A program made the translations under genes and the position numbers. From the IMG/VR virus record IMGVR_UViG_3300034072_000926, positions 248,001 to 312,000 of that record: a stretch of 64,000 bases of DNA. The stretch is one strand, 5' to 3'. Below the pieces are notes generated by a model. It did not search any database, was not told the origin of the DNA, and saw nothing but the letters and a program-made list of their open reading frames with translations. This document shows positions 1-46,776 of this stretch, one piece after another. How positions within the stretch are numbered: position 1 is the stretch's first letter; every line of letters starts with the position of its first letter.

Positions 1-23
1 GCAGGGAGAATTGCGTTGTGTCA

Positions 24-533
24 CTATCCGATATGTTTCCAAGTTTTCCTTGATTTTACGTTCTTGATTGTAGAAACATTAACCGAGAATTTATCAGCCA
101 ACTGAACATTCGTTAGATTAGAATTCCTAATAAAACGGATATCATTTTCTTTGAGGACCGAACAACCGTTTCTTTCTCCGATTGCATTCCTACCTCGAGC
201 AATACAGTCATCAGAATTGTCTTTATGCGTTCCGATAGATAAATGAGATGGTTTCACACATGATGGATTATCACAGGAATGTCGAATGAGCATTCCGATA
301 GGTATGTTTCCGTTATGTGCTTCGTAAGACAATCGATGAGCAAAGATTTGCTTCCCGTTCAGGATTACAAATCCATAACCTTTTCTATCACGAGAGCCTG
401 TCCAGATCAAGCAATCGTTGACCTCTTTAGAGTTTAGATCTATTCTACATTTAGGAGAACAGACTTTCTTAGTCGAGTTGCTATTCACTTGCATTTCATT
501 AGAACATACAAGACATTGGACAGTGTAAGACAT
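24..533 (-). CDS. HNH homing endonuclease (N-terminal Cys cluster, HNH_3-type core, C-terminal HTH)
   Basis: CxxC..C..C N-terminus; 'CLIWTG..DRKGYG..AHRLSY..IRHSCDNPSCVKPSHL..GTHKDN'; HTH-like C-terminus. ATG at 533 preferred over track GTG at 563. Confidence 0.9.
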   Translation of the reverse strand: MSYTVQCLVCSNEMQVNSNSTKKVCSPKCRIDLNSKEVNDCLIWTGSRDRKGYGFVILNGKQIFAHRLSYEAHNGNIPIGMLIRHSCDNPSCVKPSHLSIGTHKDNSDDCIARGRNAIGERNGCSVLKENDIRFIRNSNLTNVQLADKFSVNVSTIKNVKSRKTWKHIG

Positions 534-544
534 CGATCTTGAGA

Positions 545-647
545 TTGAGGAGGTGGGGGCCACGCAAACCCCCGCAAGCTGCTCTGGAACTACCGTTCCT
601 GCGCGAAGAAAGGAATCACCTCCTCAAGAGTAAATTGGGCAGCTTGC
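545..647 (-). ncRNA. Candidate pseudoknotted structured RNA upstream of HNH gene
   Basis: Interleaved perfect helices 545-555/617-627 (11 bp) and 574-582/639-647 (9 bp), plus internal hairpins. Confidence 0.5.
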
Positions 648-649
648 TT

Positions 650-670
650 TGTGGGGCACTAGGCCCCACA
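650..670 (-). terminator. Hairpin directly after the clamp gene stop
   Basis: TGTGGGGC-ACTAG-GCCCCACA, 8-bp stem; no U-tract, so role uncertain. Confidence 0.4.
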
Positions 671-674
671 CTCA

Positions 675-1430
675 TTACTTCTTGCGAGCAGGAAGAATGA
701 ACTTGTATTCGGCAACACCCGAAGCCATCGTGATCTGCAGAGCGCCACGGCTCGAGAACTGAAGCTTGAGGTTTTCGTCAGCACCCAGCTTGAGGATCTT
801 CAGCACTGGATCAATGCCCCAGTGAAGATCGCCACCCAGGTCACCCGAGACATCGTCAGCGATGGTTAGGTAAGCGCGGTGCATGGACGAACCTTCGTCG
901 CCGATGTAGAAGCGCAGCTCGTTCTTGCCTTCTTCGTTCTTGACGGTCTTGACCATGAAGAAGTTTTCGAAGGTGCTATACAGACCTGCAAGAGCCTGCA
1001 GTTCCTTGAGCTTGCTGGCCGAAGGATCAACCTCGACGTCCCAGGTCGTGCCCAGGAACTTAGCCTGGTCAGGAATCAGATCCTTCGACATCAGACGGTA
1101 AGCTGCATTGCTCTTGGTGTTCTTGTTGTTGAACACGATTTCCTCAGGGGTATCAACGCCACCACGATCGCGACGCTTAATGTCGACGGTCACCCCGTCG
1201 CCCTTGTAGAGAGCACTGGTAACCAGACCCTGCAGAAGACCAAGCTGCGACAGACCGAATTCACCCTTGAGGGCTGGTTCGACGGTGGTCAGCTCGCCCT
1301 TGACAATGACAGTGCGATCATTGTCCATAGCTTCGATGATGGTCTTGTCATCAGTGCCGGTGATCTTCACCGTGTCGATGAAGCCAAGGCCACCAGTGTG
1401 CCTTACGATGTCCTGAAATGTTTCACGCAT
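675..1430 (-). CDS. Probable DNA polymerase sliding clamp (gp45-like)
   Basis: 251 aa, beta-rich, close to polB, clamp loader in same window; resembles jumbo-phage clamp family from memory. Confidence 0.55.
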   Translation of the reverse strand: MRETFQDIVRHTGGLGFIDTVKITGTDDKTIIEAMDNDRTVIVKGELTTVEPALKGEFGLSQLGLLQGLVTSALYKGDGVTVDIKRRDRGGVDTPEEIVFNNKNTKSNAAYRLMSKDLIPDQAKFLGTTWDVEVDPSASKLKELQALAGLYSTFENFFMVKTVKNEEGKNELRFYIGDEGSSMHRAYLTIADDVSGDLGGDLHWGIDPVLKILKLGADENLKLQFSSRGALQITMASGVAEYKFILPARKK

Positions 1431-1465
1431 TAGGGAGTTTATCCTTCTATTTGGATGTTTAACCT

Positions 1466-1494
1466 AATCTAGCAATTAGGTGAACGAACGTCAA
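1466..1494 (-). promoter_or_regulatory. Sigma70-type promoter
   Basis: TTGACG-N17-TAGATT (GCTAGATT) upstream of 1430 start. Confidence 0.55.
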
Positions 1495-1497
1495 TAA

Positions 1498-1800
1498 TTA
1501 GATCACCCTGACTTCGCATTGTCCACCGAAACGGCCCTGTCCGTCCGTGTAAACCGCAACTTCGTAACCCTCAGAATCGAGAGTCTTTACGAAGTCACAG
1601 AATGCAGTCATCTTGTCAGCTGGGATGATCCAGTTTGCTGCCTTCACATTGTTGTAGGCAATCATATACCCGGCCCAGCTGAGCTCAGGGAATTCAGCGA
1701 ATAGGAGTTCTCCCGTTCGCCGTTCACTTGAGGACAACTCTTCACGCGAAGGTGCCTTAGTGCGATTAATTAGGAGAACTCTATTCATCTTATTCCTCAA
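1498..1800 (-). CDS. Hypothetical protein
   Basis: 100-aa ORF with 4-nt overlap to polB stop. Confidence 0.7.
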   Translation of the reverse strand: MRNKMNRVLLINRTKAPSREELSSSERRTGELLFAEFPELSWAGYMIAYNNVKAANWIIPADKMTAFCDFVKTLDSEGYEVAVYTDGQGRFGGQCEVRVI

Positions 1801-4800
1801 AAGCTAAAGAGATCATTGAAAGTCGTGTCTTCGCGGGTCTCACTGAGGTCCCACTTCAACACACCAATCAGGTTGTTGATCTTCTTGTCAATGATCGTGT
1901 CTTCCATCGACGCAGAGTCGAAAGGAAGTTCCTTATACCACTCCGGAATGTTGAGCTCGTCGATTGGATAGGCAACGCTGTCCATCTTCAACGGGTTTGG
2001 CTTCAACTTGCAAACAATAACCTTCTGACCATCGCTGATTTCCATTGCATAATGGTCATTGTAGAGCTTGCGGAGAGTGTTCCAGTGGATAGACGCTTGA
2101 ACGTGTCCAGGAACCCTAACCTTTTCCTTCGGGCCGGATTTCAGAATATCTTTCTTGCCATCACCTGCGGTTAGGCGGTCAACATATCCCGTAATACCGT
2201 TCACCTTCTTCGGCGTTCCCTGAAGATATCCAGGCAAAGCACGGAAGTCCTTACGGAACTCACGAATCATATCAAAGATCAAATCCTTGCTTCCTCCGTC
2301 TAGCAGAGTGGTAATGATCTTTTCAAGAAACTCTTGCATAATCTTTGGCGTATCAGCGCGCTTGAGATCCAGACCAACGGCCTTGATCTTACCAGGCTTA
2401 CCATTAACGTCAAGACGCACCCCATCCTTGTCATACATCAGAAGAGCATAACGCTTCTTAGTGATGAACAAACCACGGCTTGCAATTAGTTCTCGACCTG
2501 CCTTAATGATTGCACCGCGTTCAAGACCAGTATTGAATGCCTGATCCATGAAGGGTGGGAAGCTATCGTTGACCTCGTCACCGATACCATCATAGAGACT
2601 GATCATTGCCTCACGACTTTCCAGCATCGAAGCCAACTCTGGATCTGCCTTCAGCATGTGATATGCGGTGAAGTAAACCGAGTCAGTATCGTTGTATAGA
2701 ATTGCATCACCACGAACGTCATAGACACCAGTGATGATTTCGTTGGCCTTGCTGCTCATGTGCTTGGTAATCGTTCGACCCGTCAAGGTAACCGACTGAC
2801 CAATACGAGCGTCATAGAAACGACAACCCTCATTGAGAAGCGCACCATATAGGGAGTTCAGGAGGATCTTACGAGCCTGCTGACGCTGATTCCAGAATAC
2901 TTCGTGTTCTTTGGCTTCCTTAAAGTGTGATTCGTTGATGAAGATTTTGCCATCATCAATCCTAATCGCACCTTGCTCAATTAGGCTTCGGAGCGAACTG
3001 GCATCCTTGGCTTTTACAAAGTCTGCCAATTCAGCAAAGCTGGCAGTTTCGGTTGCATACTGAGACATGATTGCGTCAATGAATTCAGTATCGATGGAAT
3101 CACCCTTCTTGAGAGCAAAACCCTTGGACTGTGCTGCTGCTTCACTGTAGACAGTTTCTTTGAACTGCATTGCCTTACGTTCGGAATACCAGCGAGCCAG
3201 AAGGCCCGGAATGACTGCCTCAACGTCAGTACGGAAGATCGTTCCATTTGCAGTGATGCAGTAGGGATTGCCCTGAAGGAAGATATACTCATAAAGCTGA
3301 GCACCGGTGACTTCTAGGGTGTTGCCATCCTCAAAGTCAACAACCATCTTCTCATCTGTGCGATCAGCGACCATCTGGTATTCGAGAGTGCTGAACAAGC
3401 CTTCCCAACATTCTGGACCAGGAGTACCCTGAGCCAGACGACTGTCGATGAGCGCGTTAGTGCGCTGAAGCCTGATCTGTCCAACGAGAGTCTCTGGGCC
3501 CATGTTAAGCGCACGGAGCGCAGATGGATACAGGGAGTTAATGTCGCAACATGCAATCTCATCATGCAGGCCAATCTTCGGCTTTGCCACGTATGCGCCG
3601 ACAACTGGTCGCTTACCATCGGCAAACTTGAAAGATGGGGTGCCATCTTCATTCTCTTCGTCGTCATTGTCGAAGTCATCATCAACATCGACTTCGAAGT
3701 CTGCGCGCTTCCTGTTTGGAACGCACATGCCACGACTGTGGGCTTCATTGATGATCGACTGCTCAATTAGAGCCACCGAACCCATCGTGGTTGGCAAGAG
3801 AACAGTATTTGCGTGAGCAATCTGATTTGCTAGACCGATGAAACGCTTCTTCTGGTCAATCTTATAGAGTAGAAGAGTGTCCTGGCGGTTGTATTCGAGG
3901 AATAACTTGAAGTCCCTCTTGTAGAGGTTGTCCAGGGTGCCGTTGTAGGCAACCTTATTTTCCTTGACCTCAATCTCACCCACGTAGTCTAGACGATAAC
4001 TGTGGAGTTCCTGAGGATTATGCTTCTTGTAAAGCTCAAGATAGTCAAGGTGAATACGACCAATCAGGTCATATGTATTGTGCTCTTTCTTGAACTGGGT
4101 GTACTTCTTCCGGCGAGGACGCTGGTTCCAAAGGCACATCCTCTTACTGTGGTCTTTGCCCATCAATCGCTCGATGCGGTTCACCACGTAGGGAATATCG
4201 AAACCCTTGGAGTTCCATCCGCTCAATACGTCCGAGTCCTCAATGAGGTCTAGGAAGATGTCAAGCATCTGAACTTCGTCATTACACAGAATAGTATTTG
4301 GTAGACTCTGACAGATCGCTTCTGCGGCTTCCCAAGTCAGGTGATCCTTATCGGATTCTGGCAAGTTAGGCTTTAGGCAGAGAGTGTATAGTTCGTTGTC
4401 TTGAGAGCGATGGACTGAGATAGCTGTGATTGCGCTGAACGGATCATCCGGACGAGCGAAGCCTCGCTGAGGATCAAAGTCCACCTCAATATCGAAGAAA
4501 GCCAGATTCAGTTCTGGCGATTCAGCGCCTAGATAGTTCTCCTCGAGACAACGAAATACCGGATTGATATCGCTCTCGTAGGTCTTGCGACTACCCTGCA
4601 TCCTTAGTTCAGCTTGGAACTTCTTATGCGAGGTGTAGGAACTTTTGGAAACTGGTCGACCCCACATGTCTTTGTAGCGGCCGGCGCGAGGATCTTCATA
4701 GTAGAAAACATAATTGGCAGGTAGCGAACGAAACACTCGCTGACCATCAATGCGCTCTACGATGAGAATCTCGTCCTTTTCTTTGTCGTGCATTGCATCA

Positions 4801-4811: not shown

Positions 4812-4903
4812 TTAGATTCTCCTTATTCTTATGTTCTTGGGTGCTTATTTACCATAACACCTATTCGATCTAGAATGCGATATTCAGGTGAACTAGAAAC
4901 AAG

Positions 4904-6048: not shown

Positions 6049-6321
6049 TTACAACTTTAAGGGAATCATTCCTGCCCAAGTGATCTTGAACAACATAGCA
6101 TCCTGTGGATCTGCAAACCAAACACCATCGTCGTGCGGATTGACATCTCCTTTGCAATTATCAAGGAGCCATTCTCTGATGTTATCGTCCCAGAACACCG
6201 CAAGCTGATCATCATGCTTTTGTGTCATCTTCCGACGAGGAGGAAGACCAAGATCTTCCCAGAATACCGTTACACTTCGAAGCGTAATGACAATCGGATC
6301 AAAGTCCTCTGACTCACTCAT
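6049..6321 (-). CDS. FKLxW-family small protein
   Basis: 'IREWLLDN...WFADPQDAMLFKITW'. Confidence 0.75.
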   Translation of the reverse strand: MSESEDFDPIVITLRSVTVFWEDLGLPPRRKMTQKHDDQLAVFWDDNIREWLLDNCKGDVNPHDDGVWFADPQDAMLFKITWAGMIPLKL

Positions 6322-22744: not shown

Positions 22745-23527
22745 ATGAGCATATTTTCAAAGATGATGGGTCTGATAGGACTACAATCGGTTACAGTTTA
22801 TGAGGATCTGATTCCTCACGACAATACTAACCTGTTCTATACGGTAATTGATATCCCTGAGGGTCCGGGAGTGGAAAAACTCAACTGGATCCTAGAACAG
22901 TTGCCGCCTCTTGACCTCAAAGCAGGGCCGTGGGTTGCAGGCGGCGCAGCTCGTCGACTACTAGAGGGTCAGCCACTAGAAGGTGGAGATGTTGATATCT
23001 TCTTCTCTTGTAGGAAGTCTTTCAAGATCTTCTGTCAGCATCTGGAGAGTTATCAGTTGGTCATTTCGACCGAACGAGCAAAGACCTTTATGGTGCAAGG
23101 GATCAAGGTTCAGGCAATTTGTCGCCAGACCTACATCACAGTTGAAGATCTCTTCAAGGATTTTGATTTCAGCGTCTGTCAGATTGCCACAGACGGCAAG
23201 AAGATTGCTATCTCGAATCAAGGTCATCGAGATATGAAGGAACGAGTCCTTCGATTTGCCCCAGGTGGGAAGGTTGCTCGTCAGACTGTCATCAAGCGAA
23301 TGACCAAATATCTCGCATACGGATTCATTCCCGAACCAGGTCTCTATGAGACTATGGTCAATAGCGGGTTGTTAGGTGTGAGCAGTTATTCGATCTTTGA
23401 AGGCTCAGAAGCTGATTCGTCAAACTATGATATTCCGGAAGGTGAAGAATTGCCTCCGGTTGATGTTGAGGAAGCCAATGCAGAGTTTCTGCGTGATGCT
23501 GCCCTCCGTCTAGGGATTGAAATCTAA
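22745..23527 (+). CDS. Class II nucleotidyltransferase head domain (CCA-adding/poly(A) polymerase-like)
   Basis: 'WVAGGAARR..GDVDIFF' and 'DFDFSVCQIA'. Confidence 0.7.
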   Translation: MSIFSKMMGLIGLQSVTVYEDLIPHDNTNLFYTVIDIPEGPGVEKLNWILEQLPPLDLKAGPWVAGGAARRLLEGQPLEGGDVDIFFSCRKSFKIFCQHLESYQLVISTERAKTFMVQGIKVQAICRQTYITVEDLFKDFDFSVCQIATDGKKIAISNQGHRDMKERVLRFAPGGKVARQTVIKRMTKYLAYGFIPEPGLYETMVNSGLLGVSSYSIFEGSEADSSNYDIPEGEELPPVDVEEANAEFLRDAALRLGIEI

Positions 23528-25091: not shown

Positions 25092-27434
25092 TTACGCGAT
25101 TTCAGTGAGTTCCAGAACGTCTTCGACTGGAGCCGAACCACTGACCTTCAATGCATCGCCATCTACATCCAAGTGGGCAATGCCACCGGACTTCAACAGA
25201 CCGAAGAGCATCAGTCGGCTAAGTGGCTTGCTGACTTCATTCTGAATCACGCGAGCCAGAGGACGCGCACCCATCTTAGGGTCATAGCCCTTACGAGCCA
25301 GGTAGTCCAGTGCAGCATCAGTTGCCTCGATGGTAACACCCTTCTCCTGAGCCTGCGAGTTCAGCTGACCCATGAACTTCTGCACGATGCGAATCATGTT
25401 CTCGCTCTTGAGCGCGTTGAACTTCACAATCGCATCCAGTCGGTTGCGGAACTCAGGGGCAAACATCTTCTCAATGACCTTGTCATCGTTGCCAGCAATC
25501 GAGTTGCTACCGAAGCCCAGGTTATTCTTCTGGAGTTCACTTGCACCGGCGTTGCTGGTCATGATCAGGATCACGTTGCGGAAGTTCACCGTCTTGCCTG
25601 CACTGTTGGTCAGTTCACCATTGTCCATGACCTGCAGGAAGATGTTAAAGATGTCCGGATGAGCCTTTTCGAGTTCGTCGATGAGAAGCACACAATGCGG
25701 GCTGTTCTCAACAGCATTGGTCAGAAGACCCGAACCCGAAGCACCATCGCCAAAGCCCACGTAACCCGGAGGGGAACCGATGAACTTGCTGACGCTGTGC
25801 TTCTCCATGTATTCCGACATATCGAAACGATGAAGAGGAATATTGAGTGTCTTGCTCAACTGCTTCGCAAGTTCAGTCTTACCCACGCCGGTCGGACCAG
25901 CGAAGAGGTAGTTACCCTGAGGCTTGTTGGGATCGCGCAGACCAGCACGGCTCAGAAGAACCGCATCGACGACTTCGTCGATTGCCTGATCCTGTCCGAA
26001 AACCACACCATAGAGGTCACCATGCAGACGTTCCAGCTTCTCGGTCTCGTCTTCCTTAACCGAACGAGCAGGGATCTTTGCAATGCGACTGACTTCTTCC
26101 TCGATGAGTTCGACCGTGATCTGTGTCTTGCGGTCGGCCTCAGGCGCAATGCGCTGACGAGCACCAGCAGCGTCGATGACGTCAATGGCCTTATCAGGCA
26201 GCATCTTGTCAGTCACATAGCGGGCAGTCAATTCGACCGCTGCATCAAGGGCAGCATCGTCGTAGGTGATGCCGTGATAATCAGCATAGACCTTCGAAAT
26301 ACCAGCGATGATCCGCTTTGCATCAGCGATGCTTGGCTCGGCAATATCCAGCTTCTGGAAGCGACGCAGCAGAGCGCGATCCTTCTCGAAATGCTTGCGA
26401 TATTCCTCATAGGTTGTGCCACCAATGCAACGCAGCTTACCCTTTGCCAGTGCAGGCTTCAAGAGGTTTGCAACGTCGAGTGCGCCATTGCTTCCGGCAC
26501 CTGCACCCATCATGGTGTGGATTTCGTCGATGAACAGGATGATGGGAACCTGCTTCTCTTCACTGACCTTCTCGAGTGCTTCGAGAATCTGCTTCACACG
26601 CTCTTCCATGTCACCACGGAACTTCGTGCCGGCCATCAGTGCGCCGATTTCCAAGCTGTAGACAGTTGCACCCTTGAGAGCATCTGGGACATTCTCTTCG
26701 GCAATCATCTTCGCAAGACCTTCGACAACCGCAGTCTTACCAACGCCGGGTTCACCGACGATGACCGCGTTGTTCTTGGTCCTACGAGCAGTAGTGAGGA
26801 TCAGGCTTGCAACTTCGGCTTCACGACCAATCAGAGGGTCAATCTTGCCCTCAAGTGCCTGCTCGTTGAGGTTGACACAGAACTTGTCCAGCAGGCGTTC
26901 GTTCTTGGACTTCTTAGGGCCCTTGTCTTCACCGCCAGGAACGTCTTCGTCATCCTTGGTCTTGACCTCGCCGGTCTCTTCTTCGTCAAGAAGATCGTCA
27001 TGAGCAACAGCCTTCTTCACGTCGAAGATGTCCAGATTCTGCTTCGCGAGGAAGTAGCAAGCAAAATTGCTCTCCTCAGCATTCTCTTGCATGATTGCGA
27101 TGAGAATGTCGATTGCACGGAAATCATGACGACCGCTGAACAACACCTGGCTAACAGTGCGCTGAACAACTCGGGCAAGGCTCATAGTCTGACGGGGTGG
27201 CTGTCCATTTGCCTTGCCGAGAACGCCGGCGTTAAAATGAGCAACCAAGTCAGCGCTCAATTCGGGCATGTTTGCCCCGAGTTCAGAGAGCACTTCAATG
27301 ACCCGATGGTCCTGAATGACAGCAGCCAACAGGTGTTCCAGGGTCAGGTATTCATGATCATATTTCATCGCAATGTCTTGCGCCTGATCGATGATCTGCT
27401 GGGCCCGGGTCGGGTCGTAGTCTTCCATGGCCAT
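25092..27434 (-). CDS. clpA: ATP-dependent Clp protease ATPase subunit ClpA
   Basis: Clp N-domain 'HEYLTLEHLL', Walker A GEPGVGKT and GPTGVGKT, 'FIDEIH', LGF docking loop, no M domain. Confidence 0.95.
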   Translation of the reverse strand: MAMEDYDPTRAQQIIDQAQDIAMKYDHEYLTLEHLLAAVIQDHRVIEVLSELGANMPELSADLVAHFNAGVLGKANGQPPRQTMSLARVVQRTVSQVLFSGRHDFRAIDILIAIMQENAEESNFACYFLAKQNLDIFDVKKAVAHDDLLDEEETGEVKTKDDEDVPGGEDKGPKKSKNERLLDKFCVNLNEQALEGKIDPLIGREAEVASLILTTARRTKNNAVIVGEPGVGKTAVVEGLAKMIAEENVPDALKGATVYSLEIGALMAGTKFRGDMEERVKQILEALEKVSEEKQVPIILFIDEIHTMMGAGAGSNGALDVANLLKPALAKGKLRCIGGTTYEEYRKHFEKDRALLRRFQKLDIAEPSIADAKRIIAGISKVYADYHGITYDDAALDAAVELTARYVTDKMLPDKAIDVIDAAGARQRIAPEADRKTQITVELIEEEVSRIAKIPARSVKEDETEKLERLHGDLYGVVFGQDQAIDEVVDAVLLSRAGLRDPNKPQGNYLFAGPTGVGKTELAKQLSKTLNIPLHRFDMSEYMEKHSVSKFIGSPPGYVGFGDGASGSGLLTNAVENSPHCVLLIDELEKAHPDIFNIFLQVMDNGELTNSAGKTVNFRNVILIMTSNAGASELQKNNLGFGSNSIAGNDDKVIEKMFAPEFRNRLDAIVKFNALKSENMIRIVQKFMGQLNSQAQEKGVTIEATDAALDYLARKGYDPKMGARPLARVIQNEVSKPLSRLMLFGLLKSGGIAHLDVDGDALKVSGSAPVEDVLELTEIA

Positions 27435-27934
27435 TAGTTCTTCCTTTCGCGCTTATCACGCTTTTTCTTTGCCATATCCAGCGTCAGCTTGCTGACCTTG
27501 GACGTAAAGCAAACACCATCCAGATGGTCCAGCTCGTGTTGGAAGCACCTTGCCGCAATGCCGGACAGTTCTTCTTCAAAGAACTCTCCCTTTGAGTTTT
27601 GGTAGCGCACCGTCACGATAGCTGGTCGTTTGACTTTGAAGTATAGCCCAGGGAAACTGAGACACCCCTCTTCAGACATAACCTGTTGTTCTTCACTTGC
27701 GGTCAGAATTTCTGGGTTATAGAAGAAGCGGGCTTCATCGTCGATCTTCATCGCAAAAATGCGATACAAAAAGCCCATCTGATTGGCCGCGAAGCCAATA
27801 CCACCTTCCTCGTCCATTAGACGAGAGAGTTCAGATTCAATATCCTCGGAATTCGCTGGTGGATTCTCGAAGTCCCATTCGGAACTCGGAACGTAGAGAC
27901 TCTCGGCCCCATCGGTCTGAAGGTTGAACTTCAC
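27434..27934 (-). CDS. def: Peptide deformylase
   Basis: GIGFAANQ, EGCLS, QHELDHLDG. Confidence 0.95.
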   Translation of the reverse strand: MKFNLQTDGAESLYVPSSEWDFENPPANSEDIESELSRLMDEEGGIGFAANQMGFLYRIFAMKIDDEARFFYNPEILTASEEQQVMSEEGCLSFPGLYFKVKRPAIVTVRYQNSKGEFFEEELSGIAARCFQHELDHLDGVCFTSKVSKLTLDMAKKKRDKRERKN

Positions 27935-28289
27935 TTAGCAACGCCCTCGCATATTGTTCGATCTGGGTGCGAGCCATTGCCGTAACGTGTCTGCAATCGG
28001 CAACCTTAGGTTCACCGCCAACGAGTCTAGCTCGTTGGACATACACTATATTATCATGCACGAAATCTCGGGCAGATACAAGAGCAAAATTGAAATCTGT
28101 AATTAAAGATTGATCAACCCTGCCACCTCGGTCGGTCGAGTTGCGTTCAAGCAATCGACGGAAGTCCAATGCCCAAGAGCCATATTCTTGTTCGACCTTA
28201 TCACACGCACGAATCACAGTCTGGTCAGAAGTCTGAGCCATTGCTGGGACACTTGAGAGCATAAGAATCAAACCGGCTAGTAGTCGCAT
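27837..28289 (-). CDS. Putative exported protein
   Basis: Signal-peptide-like MRLLAGLILMLSSVPAMA-Q; GGAGG RBS; 3' end overlaps def by 98 nt. Confidence 0.6.
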   Translation of the reverse strand: MRLLAGLILMLSSVPAMAQTSDQTVIRACDKVEQEYGSWALDFRRLLERNSTDRGGRVDQSLITDFNFALVSARDFVHDNIVYVQRARLVGGEPKVADCRHVTAMARTQIEQYARALLSEVQPSDRWGRESLRSEFRMGLRESTSEFRGY

Positions 28290-28332
28290 TGAACCTCCTT
28301 TCGTCCCATAGATAAAAGGATTAGGTTAGAAG

Positions 28333-29178
28333 TCAAGCTTTTCTTTTCGCCCTGATGGCTTCAATGGCTTGACGATCCTCTTCATCAAGCTTTTCAGGAG
28401 TGAATGCAATTTCTACCATCATGTCTCCGCGACGACCATCGCCGAGTGGCATACCTTTACCAGCAGCCCTCAAGGACTGACCGGGATGAATACCCGCCGG
28501 GACGCGCATCTTGATCTTACCGCCCTCAATCGTTGGGATTTCGACTTCGGTTCCCAATAGCGCATCGAGATATCCGATGTTTACATTTGCGACTAGATGG
28601 TGTCCCATACGAGTGAAAGTAGTGTGAGGCATGACGTTGATCTTCACATATAGATCACCGGCTTTCACATTCGACATAGAGTCATCACCCTTGCCTTGGA
28701 ATCTCAGACGAATGCCGTCCTGGATACCTGCTGGGATTTTGATCTTGATGCTCTGCGTTTCCTTGTTGGGAAGATTGTAGGAGATCTCTGCTTCGCGTCC
28801 TGTATAGCTCTCTTCAAGGGTAATCGTGTAGTTGAGCACAATATCACGATTGCGAGCATCTTCAGGATACGGGTTTCTCGAACGACGAATATCTTTGAGG
28901 ATCTCCTCAATGTCAACTTCTGGGCGAGGTTGATTGGACCAATGAAAGTTTGGATTGGGACGAAATCCACCGGTCCTCTGTGCATCATACTGGGAACGCT
29001 TGTTTGCGTCCTTCAACACATCATAGGCTTCGCCGACTTCTTTGAAACGAGCCTCTGCCTCTTTGTTGTTCGGATTGGTATCAGGATGGTTCTCCTTAGC
29101 CAACTTGCGATAGGCAGACTTGATCGCTGCTTCATCAGCCGTGACTGGAACACCGAGGACCTGGTAATAATCTTTCAT
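28333..29178 (-). CDS. dnaJ: DnaJ-class co-chaperone (CbpA-like, no zinc finger)
   Basis: '[19 protein letters not shown]' J-domain, C-terminal 'GDLYVKI'. Confidence 0.92.
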
Positions 29179-29265
29179 AATCTCTTTCTACAGATAGAAA
29201 TGCTCTATGTCAAAATTGACTAAACGGTTTCCGAATAATTATCAACGTAGATAAAGGAGAAAAAG

Positions 29266-29604
29266 ATGGACGATCTGTTCGGTAAGGTATTTCAGACCAA
29301 TCGCCAGCGAGTGATGGACATTTTCGACCGTCGTATGCTCAAGCTGGGTGAAGAGTATGGCGAAGCATGTCAGGCCTACCTGAGTGTTTCGAGTGAGAAC
29401 AACAGCAAGAAAAAGTCGTGGGATGATGTCCGTGAGGAACTCGTCGACGTCTTAGTGGTCACCCTTGATCTACTCTGTCACACTATGCCCGATGAAAAGG
29501 ACATGACTGAGGAGGAAAAACTCGCTAGTGTGACTAAGATTCTTAATCGCAAGCTTGATAAGTGGGCGAAGAAAATTAAGAAAAGTGAGGACACAAGCAA
29601 GTGA
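29266..29604 (+). CDS. MazG-like NTP pyrophosphohydrolase
   Basis: 'KLGEEYGE...EELVDVLV'. Confidence 0.7.
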   Translation: MDDLFGKVFQTNRQRVMDIFDRRMLKLGEEYGEACQAYLSVSSENNSKKKSWDDVREELVDVLVVTLDLLCHTMPDEKDMTEEEKLASVTKILNRKLDKWAKKIKKSEDTSK

Positions 29605-29918
29605 AATATGTTCTGGCCCAGAAGCCTGAGAAGCACAATGGAGGAGTGTTCTTCGAGCACGAGATCCATTTCGTTCTTGAAGGCGACGGAGCCCGATTCA
29701 GTTCCACAAGACTGCGCGCACAGGTCGAAGCTTTTATTGCTGAGAACATAGGCGCCAAACACTCTGATTTCAGGGTTTCAGTAAGTCTGCGATGGAATCG
29801 CGAAGCAAAAACTATCAGCAGCTACGGCCAATATCATATGAGCGCAGTTGCTACCGTCAAGGCTAGATTTGTGGACAAGAACAAAGCTTTGCGTTTTAAG
29901 CTGTCCTGGCCTCATTAA
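29601..29918 (+). CDS. FKLxW-family protein
   Basis: 'RFVDKNKALRFKLSW'. Confidence 0.7.
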   Translation: MKYVLAQKPEKHNGGVFFEHEIHFVLEGDGARFSSTRLRAQVEAFIAENIGAKHSDFRVSVSLRWNREAKTISSYGQYHMSAVATVKARFVDKNKALRFKLSWPH

Positions 29919-29958: not shown

Positions 29959-30489
29959 ATGGAATATCGATACCAAGAACCACCCGAAAAACACAACGGC
30001 CAGAAATGGTTCGGCCACGAAATTCACGTGAAGGTTGTTCCTGCACGGAAGACAGAGCTCTTCGAGTTCGTGGAAAAGATCGCCGGCGAAAAAGGCACCG
30101 GTTTTCGGGTTGTCGATATAAATCACAAATGGTCTTTCAAACGAATTGAGGATGTCGTTATACGCTTTGTGGATAAGAACTCCGCATTGCTGTTCAAGTT
30201 GACTTGGGATCCATGTCCCGAACCAGAAGATATCTTTGAACAGTTGAAAAAGATCATGGCACAATTTCCGCCCATCACAAACCATACTGCGATCATGAGT
30301 CGGCGATATCCTACTATTGATCAGTATGCGGACATATATCCAACATCGGTAGATCCTATAGTCTGGTATAAGGATTATAAAGAGCACCAGAAAACCTACT
30401 GGACCAAATCCAGAAGGATTAAAGCTGGTGATACCATCATGGATTTCAGCGAACTAAGAAAGAGGCTAGACGGTGGAACTGAATCGTAA
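29959..30489 (+). CDS. FKLxW-family protein with C-terminal extension
   Basis: 'RFVDKNSALLFKLTW'; N-terminus paralogous to 29601 ORF (QKPEKHNG / EPPEKHNG). Confidence 0.75.
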   Translation: MEYRYQEPPEKHNGQKWFGHEIHVKVVPARKTELFEFVEKIAGEKGTGFRVVDINHKWSFKRIEDVVIRFVDKNSALLFKLTWDPCPEPEDIFEQLKKIMAQFPPITNHTAIMSRRYPTIDQYADIYPTSVDPIVWYKDYKEHQKTYWTKSRRIKAGDTIMDFSELRKRLDGGTES

Positions 30490-31075
30490 TCGTCCTGACC
30501 GGCCGCATCAATCCGGAAAGAAACGTCATTTCAAAGACGGTTTTGATCTCTGGATTAAGAAAGAGCGTATCGGCGAACTGAGGAAGCTTCTAAAGGGTTG
30601 GGACCTCAAAGCTGAGAAAGATTATATCTTCTCAGTAAAGTCCACCTATGATTTTGATAGGATGAAATCCTTCGGCGGAGTAATCTGCATGGAAGCTGTC
30701 ATCTCGTTCAAATCTTCTGACAAGGCCACACTGTTTAAGCTCAGCTGGGCAGAATGTGAACCAACCCGATCTGATAGGGTGCGCTATCTCAACAAGGTCG
30801 TCTTGCCAGTCATCCGAAGGGTGATGCCGAGTATCATCGCGCATGACATCATAGGTGTTCAGCCAATGACAACACCGGCGGCCCAGGTTCACTCTTTGAA
30901 GGTGAAATACGGAACAGGCACCCCGCAACCGCAACCGCCACCGCAATCGCAATCCAAGAGCAAGCTGGAGAAGATGCTAGATGATGCCCGAGAGGAATTG
31001 AAGAAAGCCGCGGGCGCCACGTCATCCTCTCCCAACCACTCTTTCTCTCTTATCCGACCTGACGAAACGGAGTGA
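30473..31075 (+). CDS. FKLxW-family protein fused to a major-capsid-protein (Gol-like) segment
   Basis: 'SFKSSDKATLFKLSW' followed by 'IRRVMPSIIAHDIIGVQPM'. Confidence 0.75.
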   Translation: MELNRNRPDRPHQSGKKRHFKDGFDLWIKKERIGELRKLLKGWDLKAEKDYIFSVKSTYDFDRMKSFGGVICMEAVISFKSSDKATLFKLSWAECEPTRSDRVRYLNKVVLPVIRRVMPSIIAHDIIGVQPMTTPAAQVHSLKVKYGTGTPQPQPPPQSQSKSKLEKMLDDAREELKKAAGATSSSPNHSFSLIRPDETE

Positions 31076-31263
31076 GTCTGTGTCGGATCGCACCTCTGGT
31101 GTTTTCTTAATTGAAAATATTCTAAATCCATGTTATCTGGGTATACCCGCTGGGCGGGTACATCTAGACAACCTGCTTTTGTATGTTCTATTAAGCAAAT
31201 ACCGGAGTGGCGTTTATATAGTACGGAAGAATCGCTCAGAAAGAAATCAGAAAGAACAGCCAC

Positions 31264-31746
31264 ATGACAGACCTAATAACCACTCCCCATATCTATTGTG
31301 ACTTCGATGGAGTCCTAGTAGACTTCGAACGAGGTTTCGAGATGCAATATGGCAAGCGACATGATTCCGTACCTGAGTTTGTTATGTGGAAGATCATCAA
31401 GAACAATATGAGTCACTGGGAACAACTCCCAGCCATGCCAGGTGCTCTACAGCTCTGGGCATATATCGCTCGCTACAATCCAACGATCCTCACTGGCTGT
31501 CCTAGCTCTGGAATGCAGCAAGCTGCCGAAGGCAAAACCATCTGGAAGAATCGTGAACTAGGTGAGCATGTTCCGATCATAACCTGTCTATCGCGTTACA
31601 AGCCCAAGCACATGAAAGCTAAGGGCGACTTCCTCATTGACGATATGCAGAAGAACATCGACCGCTGGAATGAAGCAGGCGGTGTTGGTATCCTGCATAC
31701 CTGTGCGGCTTCTACAATCGAAAAGCTCAAGGAGCATGGTCTATGA
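31264..31746 (+). CDS. HAD-family 5'(3')-deoxyribonucleotidase
   Basis: 'IYCDFDGVLVDF' and 'LIDD..KN..W..AGG.GILH'. Confidence 0.85.
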   Translation: MTDLITTPHIYCDFDGVLVDFERGFEMQYGKRHDSVPEFVMWKIIKNNMSHWEQLPAMPGALQLWAYIARYNPTILTGCPSSGMQQAAEGKTIWKNRELGEHVPIITCLSRYKPKHMKAKGDFLIDDMQKNIDRWNEAGGVGILHTCAASTIEKLKEHGL

Positions 31747-32201
31747 ACCAGAAAGATTTCGTCCTCACTCTGATGATCATCATTGCCTGTATGGCCGCTT
31801 ATTGTCTCTTTCTCCATCTGAAGATGGAGGGAATGAAACTTGATAAAGGACGTCGTCAGCGAGTGTTCAGCGGAGATCAGGTCGGAGGCAACATTGACAT
31901 TGCCGGGCGTCATTTCAAAGGCAAAAATGTCGTCATCAAAGGAAACAAGGTCTTTGTTGATGGTCGAGACGTGTCTGAATACTTCGATGAAGGTCAGATT
32001 GTTGAGATCAAACTCACAGGTCCATTGGAGAGCTTGACTACCAGTGCGAATGTGACTTGCAAAGACGTCCAGGGCAACGTGAATGCTAATGGCAATGTTG
32101 TGTGCGGCGATGTGCGTGGTTATGTTAAGACAGACGGAAACGTGACTGCTAAGGATATCACGGGCGGCGTAAAAGCCGGCGGCAATGTAATTTATGGTTG
32201 A
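31743..32201 (+). CDS. Membrane-anchored protein with beta-helix-like repeats
   Basis: N-terminal TM helix; 'NVTCKDVQGNVNANGNVVCGDV' repeats. Confidence 0.65.
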   Translation: MNQKDFVLTLMIIIACMAAYCLFLHLKMEGMKLDKGRRQRVFSGDQVGGNIDIAGRHFKGKNVVIKGNKVFVDGRDVSEYFDEGQIVEIKLTGPLESLTTSANVTCKDVQGNVNANGNVVCGDVRGYVKTDGNVTAKDITGGVKAGGNVIYG

Positions 32202-33388: not shown

Positions 33389-33748
33389 ATGGCTCGTCGT
33401 AAAAGAAAAACCTCATATCGTTTCTCACTATCTATGTTCCTCGTAAACAGAACCTCCAAAGTTGATCGCAGGCGTCGTCGTCGCATTCGTCGTTCGAAGA
33501 ATCATTGGCGGACGATTGACAAGCTTACCTACTCAAAGATCCTCATCACGGATATTGAACGGGTATGGCTTGAGCTGAACGCACCCACGGCAACCATTAC
33601 CTATGAACGGGCTCCCAAATATAAGGAGAGCATCGCGTATCGGAAGGGTTATTGGCATGGCTATGTCTATGTCGTGCGTTTTCCTGAATCGATTTCTGAC
33701 AAGGCGATCACATTCAAACATACTTGGTGGAACAAGAAATGCCTGTAA
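33389..33748 (+). CDS. Arg-rich protein, divergent FKLxW family
   Basis: 'VRFPESISDKAITFKHTW'. Confidence 0.65.
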   Translation: MARRKRKTSYRFSLSMFLVNRTSKVDRRRRRRIRRSKNHWRTIDKLTYSKILITDIERVWLELNAPTATITYERAPKYKESIAYRKGYWHGYVYVVRFPESISDKAITFKHTWWNKKCL

Positions 33749-34041
33749 AGCCAATTGCCATCGAATGTGATATAAAGACTTTGTCTCAGGAAGCTCGTGA
33801 TTGGCTGTGGGAAGGCTCGACCGATCTCTGTTGGATTCAATCAGATTATCGGATTGAAGATCGAGAAGTCACTCGAGAAAGTGTTATCACTAATCCTGTG
33901 CCACAACATCTTATGAGTCCACATCTTATAGCTTGGTATTATAGGGCGGATGATACTTCCTTCTGGCTCACGATCAAGCATGATGCGGTGATGTTTGCTA
34001 GTCCCTCTGATGCAACCTATTTCAAGTTGACCTTCCTATGA
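33724..34041 (+). CDS. FKLxW-family protein
   Basis: 'MFASPSDATYFKLTF'. Confidence 0.7.
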   Translation: MVEQEMPVKPIAIECDIKTLSQEARDWLWEGSTDLCWIQSDYRIEDREVTRESVITNPVPQHLMSPHLIAWYYRADDTSFWLTIKHDAVMFASPSDATYFKLTFL

Positions 34042-34340
34042 AGCCCTTATTCTATATGCTCGCCAAGCATGGTCCTTGGTTACATCATGTCAGGATCTCA
34101 AAGTCTGTTAACTTCGTGAGCGCAGTTGAATGGCTAACGAAACAAGGCAAGAAGCAAGATATTGATTACGAAATCTTGATTGAGAAGATCGAGCATCGTA
34201 ATACACAGATCGTTCAACCTGGTAAGACCTCGGGATCGAAGCAATTCACTAATCCAACAGTGAAAGCAATCGAACCAATTCTGTTTTTCAATGACGCAAG
34301 TCTTGCCAGCTATGTGAAGCTTACGTGGGGTGGTCGATGA
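34038..34340 (+). CDS. FKLxW-family protein
   Basis: 'FFNDASLASYVKLTW'. Confidence 0.7.
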   Translation: MKPLFYMLAKHGPWLHHVRISKSVNFVSAVEWLTKQGKKQDIDYEILIEKIEHRNTQIVQPGKTSGSKQFTNPTVKAIEPILFFNDASLASYVKLTWGGR

Positions 34341-34723
34341 GTATCCTGAAAGCCTTTACGCATCCTGATTTTATCAAGGAAGCCAAAGAACTCATCGAGA
34401 GCTATTCTATCCTTGATAATGATGCATTTGACCTTGGATCAGAACTCCAAGCTATCTTGCTTCGACAATATGAATGGGAATTTGAGGACGAGATCAAAGA
34501 CCATCCCTATGGGATAGGAATCCCCAAGTTGGGAACCTATGATTTTGCCCAAGAGGTAGAGCTTGAACTGCTAGAATGGCTTGACAACACCTATCCCAGA
34601 GACGATTACATTTTCATGCCTCTGTCTGCTTATGGCAAATATAAGGATAAGTGGAATTGGATCTATTTCAAGAAAGCATCACAAGCTGTTCATTTCAAAC
34701 TAATCTGGTTTGATTACTTGTAA
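34337..34723 (+). CDS. FKLxW-family protein
   Basis: '[15 protein letters not shown]'; ATGA coupling at 34337. Confidence 0.7.
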
Positions 34724-34932
34724 CGGAAACTGATACGTCCCTTCGAAACATCGTAGGGAGTCATTTCTACCTCTACTCGATCGCCGAGTAGGACATTGAT
34801 ATTGTTCTTACGCATCTTGCCCGAGATATGACCGATAATCACAAAGTCATTCTCGAGCTTGACACGGAACAAAGCATTAGGAAGGACCTCGATGATTTGG
34901 CCCTTCATTTTCATTACGTCTTGCTTTGACAT
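34714..34932 (-). CDS. infA: Translation initiation factor IF-1
   Basis: 72 aa '[43 protein letters not shown]'. Confidence 0.95.
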
Positions 34933-34963
34933 TATTCCTCGCAGATGGGATACCCAGGTATAT

Positions 34964-35368
34964 TTAGCCTGAGACCGTGATCGTCTGCACTTCGATGGTG
35001 TCATCATTCATCATCGGGATAATCCACCACAGATTAGGAATAAGGTTCTCGGGAAGGTCGTAGGTCTCAACGACTTCCACGACTTCATCGGTCATCGTGC
35101 GCAGGTAGGTCATAGCCTCCGTATTGTGACATGAGAAGAAGTGAACCTTGTAGTCTGGACCCTCAAGAGTGATTCGATGATCCCAATCAATGTCCACGCC
35201 GGCTTCTTCGATGAACTCGCGCTTCATAGCATCATAGGCTGTTTCGCCGAATTCAATCTTGCCACCAACAGCGTTATAGAGTCCAGCTTGCCACTCTGGA
35301 CGGTTCTTTTGGATGAGGGTGACACGATCACCCTCATCGCTATAGAGAAGACCTGCGACGTATTCCAT
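34964..35368 (-). CDS. NUDIX hydrolase
   Basis: Nudix box [23 protein letters not shown]. Confidence 0.9.
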
Positions 35369-36009
35369 TACTTCGAGTTGCCTGCACCGAGGATCTTGAT
35401 CTCATCGCAAACGCCGAGGTCTTTAGCTTCCTGAGCCGACAGCCAAACATCATGGGCAGGAAGCAGACGTTCCAAGACCTGTGCCTTGGTCAAGCCAGTG
35501 TGCTTCATGTAGTGGTTCAGCATACGCTCCTGAGTGAGTTCAAATTCACGAACAGTAGCAAACAGTTCGTGCGACTTACCGCGAGAACCCCACGACCATT
35601 CATGCGACAGAATCGAAGTATTGGGAGTGAGAACGCGATGACCCTTTGCACCGGCGATGAAAGTGAGGAAGCCACAGGAGCCAATCATACCCAGGCCCAT
35701 AGTGTGGACGGGGATTGCGCTGCCTTCCATCGCGTCGATGATTGCGAATGCGCTATTGACTTCACCGCCAGGACTGTTGATGATCAGGGTCAGGTGATCA
35801 TACTCCTGACGAGGAGCAAAGTTTGCCTCGAGAATCCAGGTCACAATCTTGTGAGCATTCTCAGAATTGAAACCGCCGCTCAGGAAATAGACGCCCTTGT
35901 CACGCAGGGTGGGAGCAAAATTCGGCGGGGTGGTTGCCATTACAGTAGTTGCCTCGGGCGTTTCCTTCTCGATGACAACACCTTTTTCAGCACCAGTCTT
36001 CTTAACCAT
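35368..36009 (-). CDS. clpP: ClpP serine protease
   Basis: 'INSPGGEV', Ser in GSCG, His in LSHE, Asp in HDVWLSAQEA. Confidence 0.9.
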   Translation of the reverse strand: MVKKTGAEKGVVIEKETPEATTVMATTPPNFAPTLRDKGVYFLSGGFNSENAHKIVTWILEANFAPRQEYDHLTLIINSPGGEVNSAFAIIDAMEGSAIPVHTMGLGMIGSCGFLTFIAGAKGHRVLTPNTSILSHEWSWGSRGKSHELFATVREFELTQERMLNHYMKHTGLTKAQVLERLLPAHDVWLSAQEAKDLGVCDEIKILGAGNSK

Positions 36010-36520: not shown

Positions 36521-36605
36521 GCGCCTGTGGTGAAATTGGTAGACGCGCTGGTTTTAGGTACCAGTATCGAAAGATGTGGGGGTTCGAGTCCCTTCAGGCG
36601 CACCA
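36521..36605 (+). tRNA. tRNA-Leu (anticodon UAG), CCA encoded
   Basis: Acceptor GCGCCTG/CAGGCGC, anticodon loop TT-TAG-GT, long variable arm, GTTCGA, ACCA end. Confidence 0.95.
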
Positions 36606-36924: not shown

Positions 36925-36998
36925 GGTCCCGTAGCTCAGCTGGATAGAGCGTCTGCCTCCTAAGCAGAAGGTCACTGGTTCGAATCCAGTCGGGATCA
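36925..36998 (+). tRNA. tRNA-Arg (anticodon CCU), no encoded CCA
   Basis: Acceptor GGTCCCG/CGGGATC, loop CT-CCT-AA, GTTCGAATC. Confidence 0.93.
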
Positions 36999-37006
36999 CA
37001 GATCGA

Positions 37007-37801: not shown

Positions 37802-37875
37802 CGGGGAGTAGCGCAGTCTGGTAGCGCGCTTGCTTTGGGAGCAAGATGTCGCAGGTTCGAATCCTGTCTCCCCGA
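37802..37875 (+). tRNA. tRNA-Pro (anticodon UGG), no encoded CCA
   Basis: Acceptor CGGGGAG/CTCCCCG, loop TT-TGG-GA, GTTCGAATC. Confidence 0.95.
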
Positions 37876-37964
37876 CATAGTTGAAGTGGTCCCACTGACG
37901 CAAGTCATGCACCCTCAACCCTCCTAGGCCAGTTGGTCGGATTAGTCCCACCCATTGAGCTGGA

Positions 37965-38327: not shown

Positions 38328-38615
38328 ATGGATTATGAAGTCGTCTATACAGATCATGTGATGCATCTCACAGACGAAGAGACTGATCGTTTCTTCGATG
38401 CCTTTGATAAGTCAGATGACGACTTGCCTTTCTATCTCCACAACGCCCGTCACCGCTTCATAAAGCAAGATCTGTATGACTGGCTGGAGAACAATGTTGG
38501 CCAAGCTGGTTATGATTGGACACATATCAAGGGATTGACCCGAGATTGTCGTTCAATCAAGTTCAGACAACAAAGTCACGCAATGCTGTTTAAGCTGACG
38601 TTTGGAGGGAAATAA
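38328..38615 (+). CDS. FKLxW-family protein
   Basis: 'LYDWLENN...KFRQQSHAMLFKLTF'. Confidence 0.75.
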   Translation: MDYEVVYTDHVMHLTDEETDRFFDAFDKSDDDLPFYLHNARHRFIKQDLYDWLENNVGQAGYDWTHIKGLTRDCRSIKFRQQSHAMLFKLTFGGK

Positions 38616-46190: not shown

Positions 46191-46466
46191 TTATTCGCCA
46201 CCCCAGGATAGTTTGAACAACATTGCATCTTTCTTATTCTTAAAATAGAAAGCTAGACCGCCATAGCCTGCCCACTGACCGGCTGCGAAACGACCGTGGA
46301 TCATTTCGCCCTCGCACCATTCAATGGCCTCATTCACGCGAACGCGATAAGCCTTGGTATCAGTATATCCATACTGATCTTCATTGAAGTCAGAGGCCTT
46401 CAAAGGCATAAAGATACTATGCCACCGATTAACCATCAACGGATTGAATTCTCTCTTGATTCCCAT
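46191..46466 (-). CDS. FKLxW-family protein
   Basis: 'AIEWCE...YFKNKKDAMLFKLSW'. Confidence 0.75.
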   Translation of the reverse strand: MGIKREFNPLMVNRWHSIFMPLKASDFNEDQYGYTDTKAYRVRVNEAIEWCEGEMIHGRFAAGQWAGYGGLAFYFKNKKDAMLFKLSWGGE

Positions 46467-46776
46467 CTGACCAACGAAGCCTGTAAGCTTCTTCTCCCTG
46501 TTCAGTCTTAAATTCCAATTGCAAGCGATACGCTCTTGGATGGTCTTCTGTCAAGTTATCCAGATAAGTGTAGGAAACTCGAAAGGCTATCTTTGATTCC
46601 TTTAACCAAGTCATACGCTCATTCACTAATGTGTGGAACCTTTCATCCTCCCAGATGAAATTATGAAGGTCATGCCAACTACAAGGTGTGAACACTTGAT
46701 AGACAGCGCATGGATAGAGATATCTAGTGATCAACCCGCGTTCTCGGGTATCAACCTCTATTGCATCGATTTTCAT
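46429..46776 (-). CDS. Divergent FKLxW-family protein
   Basis: 'EFKTEQGEEAYRLRW'. Confidence 0.6.
   Translation of the reverse strand: MKIDAIEVDTRERGLITRYLYPCAVYQVFTPCSWHDLHNFIWEDERFHTLVNERMTWLKESKIAFRVSYTYLDNLTEDHPRAYRLQLEFKTEQGEEAYRLRWSDGNQERIQSVDG

Follow-up and report, generated by a model that had tools for sequence, protein, structure and literature searches.

We analysed a 64,000-nucleotide window covering positions 248,001 to 312,000 of the 465,259-bp viral contig IMGVR_UViG_3300034072_000926 (the same as JGI Ga0310127_000020); the window is also on a 304-kb ENA contig. Within the window, a short operon on the plus strand ends with ORF200 (P0001; 30473..31075), a 200-aa accessory protein that carries a copy of the capsid "Gol" segment. 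The operon starts at a divergent intergenic region between DnaJ and a MazG-like gene, where a sigma-70-like promoter candidate (TTGACT, 15 nt, AATTAT) lies at 29216..29242. This candidate was found by pattern search and is conserved in a sister phage (L001), but it is a consensus match only and its function is inferred. The first gene (29266..29604) encodes a MazG-like pyrophosphatase of 112 aa (PHROG 1247, E 1e-12) that is 87.5% identical to its L001 orthologue. It is followed by two tandem paralogues. The first (29601..29918) encodes 105 aa consisting of an FKLxW domain alone, ends in the FKLSW motif and shares the "PEKHNG..HEI" N-terminus with the second. The second, ORF176 (29959..30489), contains an FKLxW domain plus a 75-aa C-terminal extension, is hit by ORF200 in a tblastn search at E 0.02, and overlaps ORF200 by 17 nt, an overlap that also occurs in L001. 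We tested the ORF176 extension as a possible second structural-protein fragment, but it had no homologues. ORF200 starts with GTG at 30473 and stops at 31073-31075, with an AAGAGG Shine-Dalgarno (30459..30465) 7 nt upstream of the start. Immediately downstream, a conserved non-coding element (31088..31255) contains a terminator-like hairpin (terminator-like site at 31090-31102), a second hairpin and AT-rich boxes. This element is 82% identical in DNA to L001 although the flanking genes have saturated dS, has no match in Rfam, and may belong to the next operon.

The N-terminal FKLxW domain of ORF200 spans residues 1-96 (30473..30760), with the FKLSW motif at 30734-30748. The capsid-derived segment follows at residues 90-147 (30740..30913), with the Gol core at 30797-30883. 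Next come a Pro/Gln-rich linker (residues 148-163, 30914..30961) that is absent from the sister orthologue, a C-terminal helix (residues 164-182, 30962..31018), and a Ser/Thr/Pro-rich acidic tail (residues 181-200, 31013..31072; GATSSSPN ... IRPDE) that is conserved in the orthologue, with invariant columns in their alignment (A1). Similar tails occur in family members P0020-P0032. Residues 106-158 match Pfam PF07068 Gp23 only at profile positions 4-49 of 376 (E 1.6e-13, 51 bits against a cutoff of 24), and PHROG 138 "major head protein" matches at E 5e-14. Residues 110-141 also match the C-terminal end of the short, 128-position profile PHROG 12830 "major head protein" (E 4.5e-6). Short Gol-bearing proteins therefore already sit in a phage protein-family library under a capsid name, although that family is named by homology only and the name would be a mis-annotation for proteins of this kind. 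A phmmer search against PDB sequences aligned residues 100-148 to T4 gp23 residues 85-133 (chains 6uzc and 5vf3, E 2e-6), with 14 of 29 identities to T4 Gol (gp23 residues 93-122) and the same R-R ... P ... A.D ... G-V-Q-P-M core. This is the only Gol-like stretch in the window.

A preliminary description, made from the sequence alone, had reported a Gol segment in this ORF, and that observation is confirmed, including its T4 Gol sequence and its count of 14 matches in 29. Minor corrections are needed. The peptide was placed at 30794 but starts at 30797, 30794 being the codon before it. The ORF was said to contain nothing else of a capsid protein, whereas in relatives the C-terminal helix and tail are homologous to the capsid propeptide helix. 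It was also placed far from any structural operon, whereas tail genes lie within 8 kb and the head module 117 kb away.

We next placed the window among known phages. It had no near match in GenBank phages, but its genes include a T4-type DNA polymerase, an NAD ligase, a gp44-like clamp loader, tail sheath and fibres. The polymerase is closest to that of Sinorhizobium phage Phosso (57%), followed by Agrobacterium phage Atu_ph07 (50%) and Eneladusvirus (43%). Tail-sheath similarity to the HRDY3, Lu11 and PaBG phages raised the possibility that the phage lacks a gp23-type capsid, since PaBG has a non-gp23 capsid (PMC7412058). The true major capsid protein (MCP) was not found by tblastn inside the window, by walking the contig at both ends of the window, among the 600 rows returned by each of two IMG/VR scans, or through two 42-kb chunks of HRDY3. 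A search with the Phosso MCP, however, returned P0186 (407 aa, 89% identical to that of Phosso) on the same 465,259-bp contig, as well as P0193 on the 462-kb contig of the sister phage. Together with the polymerase, this excluded a non-gp23 capsid. P0186 lies at about 160.6-161.8 kb in a T4-type head module of portal, S77 prohead protease (3923-4561 of its locus, L184), a 470-aa scaffold-like protein (4574-5986 of L184) and the MCP, about 117 kb from ORF200 at about 278.5 kb. ORF200 thus has neither the genomic position of an MCP nor a match across the capsid fold, but it does have the conserved N-arm/Gol motif.

With the true MCP in hand, we asked whether the segment is a recent copy that is absent or eroded in relatives, the outcome that the preliminary description had named as refuting its reading. 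In tblastn, the MCP hit only this place in the window (MCP residues 56-112 to 30740-30910, 58% identity, E 7e-18), and no other head-module protein has a copy there. Over 43 aligned codons, the ORF200 segment is 29/43 (67%) identical to its own MCP in protein and 61% in DNA, with a longest exact run of 14 nt, a pS of 0.83 (saturated synonymous sites) and identities of 0.51-0.72 by sub-segment. Only one DIIGVQPM-coding stretch exists in the whole contig. The segment is therefore an old paralogue rather than a recent duplication or gene conversion tract, and DNA-level selection for homology, as in a homing or mobile-element model, is rejected for the same reason.

The segment is also conserved rather than eroded, both in the sister phage and in dozens of distant relatives. 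L001, which is from the same run as its MCP locus L186, encodes an orthologue, P0002 (173 aa, 43% identity), at the syntenic position: ClpA-like, deformylase, DnaJ, then divergently MazG-like, 101 aa, 206 aa and P0002. Nei-Gojobori estimates were dN 0.44 and dS 1.5 for the whole gene and dN 0.30 and dS 1.2 (omega about 0.25) for the Gol segment, with an omega of about 0.24 for the C-terminal tail. The two phages are close, as their MCPs are 98.3% identical (dN 0.016, dS 0.27) with Gol segments identical in all 43 aa. ORF200 thus evolves about 27 times faster in dN than the MCP. Neighbouring genes are 70-93% identical between the two phages, whereas all FKLxW genes are only 36-61% identical. 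The accessory protein therefore diverges fast, with its Gol segment and tail as conserved islands.

To determine how widespread such proteins are, we performed an exhaustive profile search (A1), which found 1,509 proteins at E <= 1e-3 and 136 at E <= 1e-10 among 50%-identity representatives. Of 167 sequences classified (150 listed representatives plus earlier hits), 32 were type I (FKLxW domain, Gol, tail, as in the window), 18 were type II (short N-terminus, Gol, about 90-aa domain ending F-x-L-x-W) and 1-2 were type III (capsid propeptide plus Gol, then such a domain; P0019). At least 50 clusters therefore join Gol to an FKLxW domain, and dozens of diverged members have intact frames. The P0019 locus is an array of 16 consecutive FxLxW genes, while the short contigs carrying P0034 and P0163 gave no context. 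The FKLxW domain itself belongs to a fast-evolving multigene family, with at least 11 members in the window and 16 in a row in locus L004, for which we found no description. It is a roughly 90-aa alpha/beta domain closed by a terminal strand-helix motif, V-x-F-x4-D/K-A-x-L-F-K-L-x-W. Through this motif hhalign linked the type I N-domain (prob 94%, E 9e-8) and the type II C-domain (prob 97.7%) to the free-standing paralogues, although the shared region is short (23-45 columns). Pfam and PHROG scans of ten FKLxW paralogues gave nothing. No GenBank phage record had a full-length type I or type II match. Phosso has the same chaperone block and FKLxW-type genes but no Gol fusion at the syntenic position; tblastn reported a second Gol-like place in its record (PV764938.1), which we did not locate.

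In many type I tails, a "LLENTR"-type helix follows Gol. A profile HMM of capsid pre-Gol regions hit 12 such tails at E 8e-12 to 0.02, against a best shuffle of 0.028. The ORF200 tail was only marginal (E 0.18; pairwise HSP E 0.04), but it aligns with the others and keeps "AAGATSS", which resembles the first residues of the mature MCP. At family level the tail thus derives from the capsid propeptide helix and the start of the mature protein, with the capsid pieces in permuted order, and the ORF200 helix is a degenerate counterpart. The positions conserved in accessory Gol (R-R, P, A, G-V-Q-P-M, P and Y) are the same as in MCPs, which argues that these residues serve an intermolecular contact.

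An AF2 model of ORF200 (34-sequence alignment, pLDDT 77) predicted a confident beta-alpha-beta-beta-alpha-beta-alpha domain over residues 1-92, with pLDDT mostly 82-97 over residues 21-100 and lower in the first 20. The Gol part was modelled as helices (pLDDT 63-77), followed by a low-confidence linker (about 53-67) and the helix at 164-182 (79-90), with no HK97 body. Fold searches of the N-domain (Foldseek against PDB and AFDB, VIA wide and ESM Atlas) gave only a generic ferredoxin- or ACT-like resemblance below the noise level, with a best Z of 6.3 to an ACT domain and small viral hypothetical proteins as the nearest Atlas models. In an AF2 model of the true MCP, the copied segment forms the N-arm, the G-V-Q-P-M loop and the first E-loop strand, preceded by the propeptide helix at residues 32-52. 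In T4, gp23 residues 66-105 are disordered in the unexpanded head, L106 points inward and the N-terminus probably contacts the scaffolding core, while after expansion the region forms the N-arm and N-fist (PMC9546572; PMC9958956).

Taken together, the sequence analyses show that ORF200 is a real, selected accessory gene of a T4-superfamily jumbo phage whose closest cultured relative is Sinorhizobium phage Phosso, and that it is a chimera of an FKLxW domain, an old copy of the capsid N-arm/Gol segment and a tail that is capsid-derived at family level. Everything concerning its function, including binding to EF-Tu, an effect on Lit, packaging and decoy activity, is inferred. We suggest that the capsid pieces are not there to build a capsid but act as a portable docking peptide that brings the variable FKLxW domain to a partner of the N-terminus of newly made capsid protein. 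Three features point to this: the invariant residues are kept without a capsid body, two separate linear pieces of the capsid N-terminus are retained in permuted order, and the tag occurs on either side of the domain. Known partners of the T4 capsid N-terminus are EF-Tu, GroEL, the scaffolding core and prohead protease, and neighbouring capsid subunits.

Of these, we tentatively rank EF-Tu first, as it is the only partner shown by experiment to bind an isolated Gol peptide. The 29-aa T4 peptide binds EF-Tu domains II/III, 13 residues of a 20-aa core matter for this binding, a longer N-terminal piece binds more stably, and Gol is the most conserved part of gp23 (PMC3014915). This has been shown only for T4 and E. 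coli, where Gol activates the Lit abortive-infection protease of prophage e14, which cleaves EF-Tu at Gly59-Ile60. As in the T4 experiments, the segment in ORF200 stands outside a capsid fold. The context also fits, with IF-1, peptide deformylase, DnaJ, a ClpA-like ATPase and ClpP encoded within 6 kb. The operon carries the host-type promoter candidate and lacks the phage nTAAATAn motif, which lies 24-46 nt before many other genes, including head and tail genes. In this view, the protein would be made from a host-type promoter, together with nucleotide-metabolism genes and next to translation and proteostasis genes, sit on EF-Tu and modulate it, shield it or ride on it to the translation machinery. 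However, the neighbourhood argument is weak, because nucleotide-metabolism and other FKLxW genes sit in the same cluster. Moreover, the FKLxW domain gives no hint of an activity on EF-Tu, and retention of the propeptide helix fits a scaffold or GroEL partner at least as well.

It is possible, if doubtful, that the family is a new class of phage factors that use a capsid-derived Gol peptide to dock variable FKLxW effector domains onto EF-Tu. If so, the extreme conservation of Gol in all gp23-type capsid proteins would be imposed by a trans-acting host partner rather than by capsid architecture, giving the 25-year-old Gol-EF-Tu interaction a physiological role. More broadly, Gol is the classic example of a phage peptide sensed by an abortive-infection system. 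Its conservation, and any benefit to the phage of its EF-Tu binding, have lacked an explanation, and the family offers a natural experiment that could help to provide one. The same residues stay conserved in proteins without a capsid fold, pointing to a binding function that small soluble proteins make directly accessible. The family also shows that short capsid-derived peptides are reused as modules on a large, fast-evolving family of jumbo-phage proteins, which annotation pipelines currently label "major head protein". We found no paper describing capsid-fragment accessory proteins or decoys. Modular phage accessory proteins that carry a peptide borrowed from head assembly are already known, and we regard these proteins as differing from them in the peptide and its placement, with a reasonable chance that they are more than that.

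A close precedent is the T4 internal proteins (IPI, IPII and IPIII) with the capsid-targeting sequence (CTS), a diverse, fast-evolving and defence-countering set of small proteins that shares only a short targeting tag (PMC3012670; PMC9958956), and by analogy ORF200 may be targeted to the prohead. Its capsid pieces would then bind the scaffolding core, as the capsid protein's own N-terminus does, so that the FKLxW domain is packaged as an internal head protein and delivered with the DNA into the next host. In T4, the N-terminal region of gp23 (residues 66-105) points into the prohead and probably contacts the scaffolding core (PMC9546572). Although we consider this unlikely, it is the strongest alternative. 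Both retained pieces are interior-facing, the capsid-length mutations A94V and G97S fall inside T4 Gol (PMC9546572), the FKLxW family is fast-evolving, and the tag occurs at either end of the domain. Conversely, the gene is 117 kb from the head module, in an operon that lacks the nTAAATAn motif and sits with nucleotide-metabolism genes. There is no sequence similarity to the T4 internal proteins, whose tag is a roughly 10-aa N-terminal peptide removed at L-x-E, whereas here it is 45-57 aa of capsid protein. The N-terminus (ME-L-N/D-x-S/R-R/K-P) is a conserved strand of the predicted domain. No conserved L-x-E site lies between domain and tag or in the tail, and in the window the equivalent position is L-K-K. 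Most FKLxW paralogues carry no tag, and competition with the capsid protein for core sites would be costly.

The interpretation offered in the preliminary description, that the phage displays the epitope separately as a decoy for capsid-sensing defences, an EF-Tu modulator or a capsid-assembly effector, is partly supported. The segment is the Gol/N-arm motif of gp23-type capsid proteins and is kept by selection as a separate module, but all three functions remain hypotheses. The description also missed the large family with three architectures, the capsid-derived tail and the fast-evolving multigene family of the N-domain. Of its three functions, we find the decoy the weakest, because the copy keeps the residues invariant in capsid Gol and by T4 precedent would be expected to trigger a Lit-type sensor, and to do so earlier in infection, rather than blind it. 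A decoy or antagonist that titrates a capsid sensor, or occupies EF-Tu in a form that cannot be cleaved, is nevertheless conceivable, if improbable. Gol is a proven Lit trigger (PMC3014915), capsid proteins directly trigger other systems (PMC9712102), and the FKLxW family evolves 2-4 times faster in protein identity than its neighbours, as arms-race genes do. In addition, the L001 orthologue of window gene 22745-23527, about 7 kb upstream of ORF200, carries a precomputed Pfam Gad2 (anti-Gabija) hit. This hit was not reproduced on the window's own protein, PADLOC and anti-defence libraries were not informative, and the Gol part is the slow-evolving island of the protein rather than its fast part.

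A modulator of capsid folding or assembly is similarly improbable. Such a protein would compete for GroEL or other chaperones, or mimic the N-arm on capsomers, tuning the timing, size or fidelity of assembly of the very large head or interfering with co-infecting T4-like phages. The gp23 N-terminus strongly targets fusion proteins to GroEL (PMC3012670, citing Snyder and Tarkowski 2005), the N-arm of mature T4 heads makes contacts within and between capsomers (PMC9546572; PMC9958956), and the gene lies beside DnaJ, a ClpA-like ATPase and ClpP. However, nothing ties the FKLxW domain to chaperones or capsids, a self-directed inhibitor would be costly, and the absence of such a gene at the syntenic position in Phosso indicates that it is dispensable for building this kind of head. 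Finally, a functionless relic, in which an accidental recombination product or assembly chimera joined part of the capsid gene to a small ORF, is effectively excluded: FKLxW arrays look recombinogenic and P0019 sits at the very start of a short contig, but ORF200 is on independent assemblies (ENA 304 kb, JGI 465 kb and Logan contigs), its orthologue is under purifying selection, family members have intact frames, and there is no DNA-level identity to the capsid gene.

The phage occurs in subsurface, soil, indoor and wastewater data sets. Metatranscriptome contigs showed presence only, at low and scattered depth that cannot indicate the timing of expression or exclude DNA carry-over. In wastewater metatranscriptome assemblies, the scattered pieces at >=99% identity include 30548-30773 and 31001-31423.

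The window contains a multigene family of small proteins of about 90-130 aa that end in F-K-L-x-W or a variant of this motif. At least 11 members were found in the window, including ORFs at 29601-29918, 29959-30489, 33389-33748, 33724-34041, 34038-34340, 34325-34723 and 38328-38615 on the plus strand, and at 6049-6321, 46191-46466 and 46429-46776 on the minus strand. A further 16 members occur in a row in L004 (positions 1-4543), the 4.5-kb contig that encodes the type III protein P0019, and Sinorhizobium phage Phosso also has members. None of these proteins has a Pfam or PHROG family. Between sister phages they diverge far faster than neighbouring genes, with identities of 36-61% compared to 70-93%. 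One member, ORF176 (29959-30489, plus strand), consists of an FKLxW domain with a 75-aa C-terminal extension that has no detectable homologues. Its 17-nt overlap with ORF200 is conserved in the sister phage, which suggests translational coupling.

The type III protein P0019 (L004 71-574) comprises the capsid propeptide plus Gol in residues 1-97, diverging from true MCPs only after G-V-Q-P-M-T-G, fused to an FxLxW domain that is paralogous to L004:1695-2114. Since this ORF lies at the very start of the contig, an assembly chimera cannot be fully excluded. In the cultured 469-kb phage Phosso (GenBank PV764938.1), a tblastn search with the Gol segment reported two places. One of these is the MCP (246,731-247,957), whereas the other could be a vertex paralogue or an accessory Gol protein in a tractable system.

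Immediately after ORF200, a non-coding stretch at 31088-31255 is 82% identical in DNA to the sister phage, while the flanking genes have saturated synonymous sites. This stretch holds a terminator-like hairpin, a second hairpin with partly compensatory changes, and AT-rich boxes. A search against Rfam gave no match. Metatranscriptome contig depth is highest here. Further downstream, a 5'-nucleotidase-like gene (31264-31746), which had only a weak NT5C match, is followed by a repeat-rich 152-aa protein (31743-32201). The Phosso counterpart of the latter is annotated as a polymer-forming cytoskeletal (bactofilin-like) protein.

The motif nTAAATAn lies 24-46 nt upstream of many gene starts, including those of the DNA polymerase, IF-1, tail fibre and sheath-region genes, and head genes. 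It was found at window positions 4852, 6052, 22229, 34967, 40611, 40628, 43215, 47761, 50021, 52677, 60428, 62518 and 62833, and at positions 1389 and about 2890 of L184, the head-module locus of this phage. This motif is probably the phage's own promoter core, related to the T4 late promoter TATAAATA.

A cluster of translation and proteostasis genes occupies 25092-29178 and 34717-36009, and includes a ClpA/B-like ATPase (780 aa), peptide deformylase, DnaJ, IF-1, NUDIX and ClpP. The DnaJ-deformylase-ClpA block is syntenic in Phosso, and Atu_ph07 also has a DnaJ homologue. For the gene at 22745-23527 (plus strand), the orthologue in the sister phage (L001 2347-3105) carries a precomputed Pfam hit to Gad2 (anti-Gabija). 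Conversely, the 70%-identical protein from the window gave no Pfam hit at 1e-3, so an anti-Gabija assignment is at most possible. The window also contains three tRNA genes, namely Leu (tag) at 36521-36605, Arg (cct) at 36925-36999 and Pro (tgg) at 37802-37876.

Finally, a 389-kb contig in an NCBI genome assembly (GCA_902726455.1, contig CACUZI010000001.1) encodes exactly the same MCP, in a head-module region that is largely, but not fully, the same as in this phage. The phage may therefore be deposited under a cellular-genome assembly accession.
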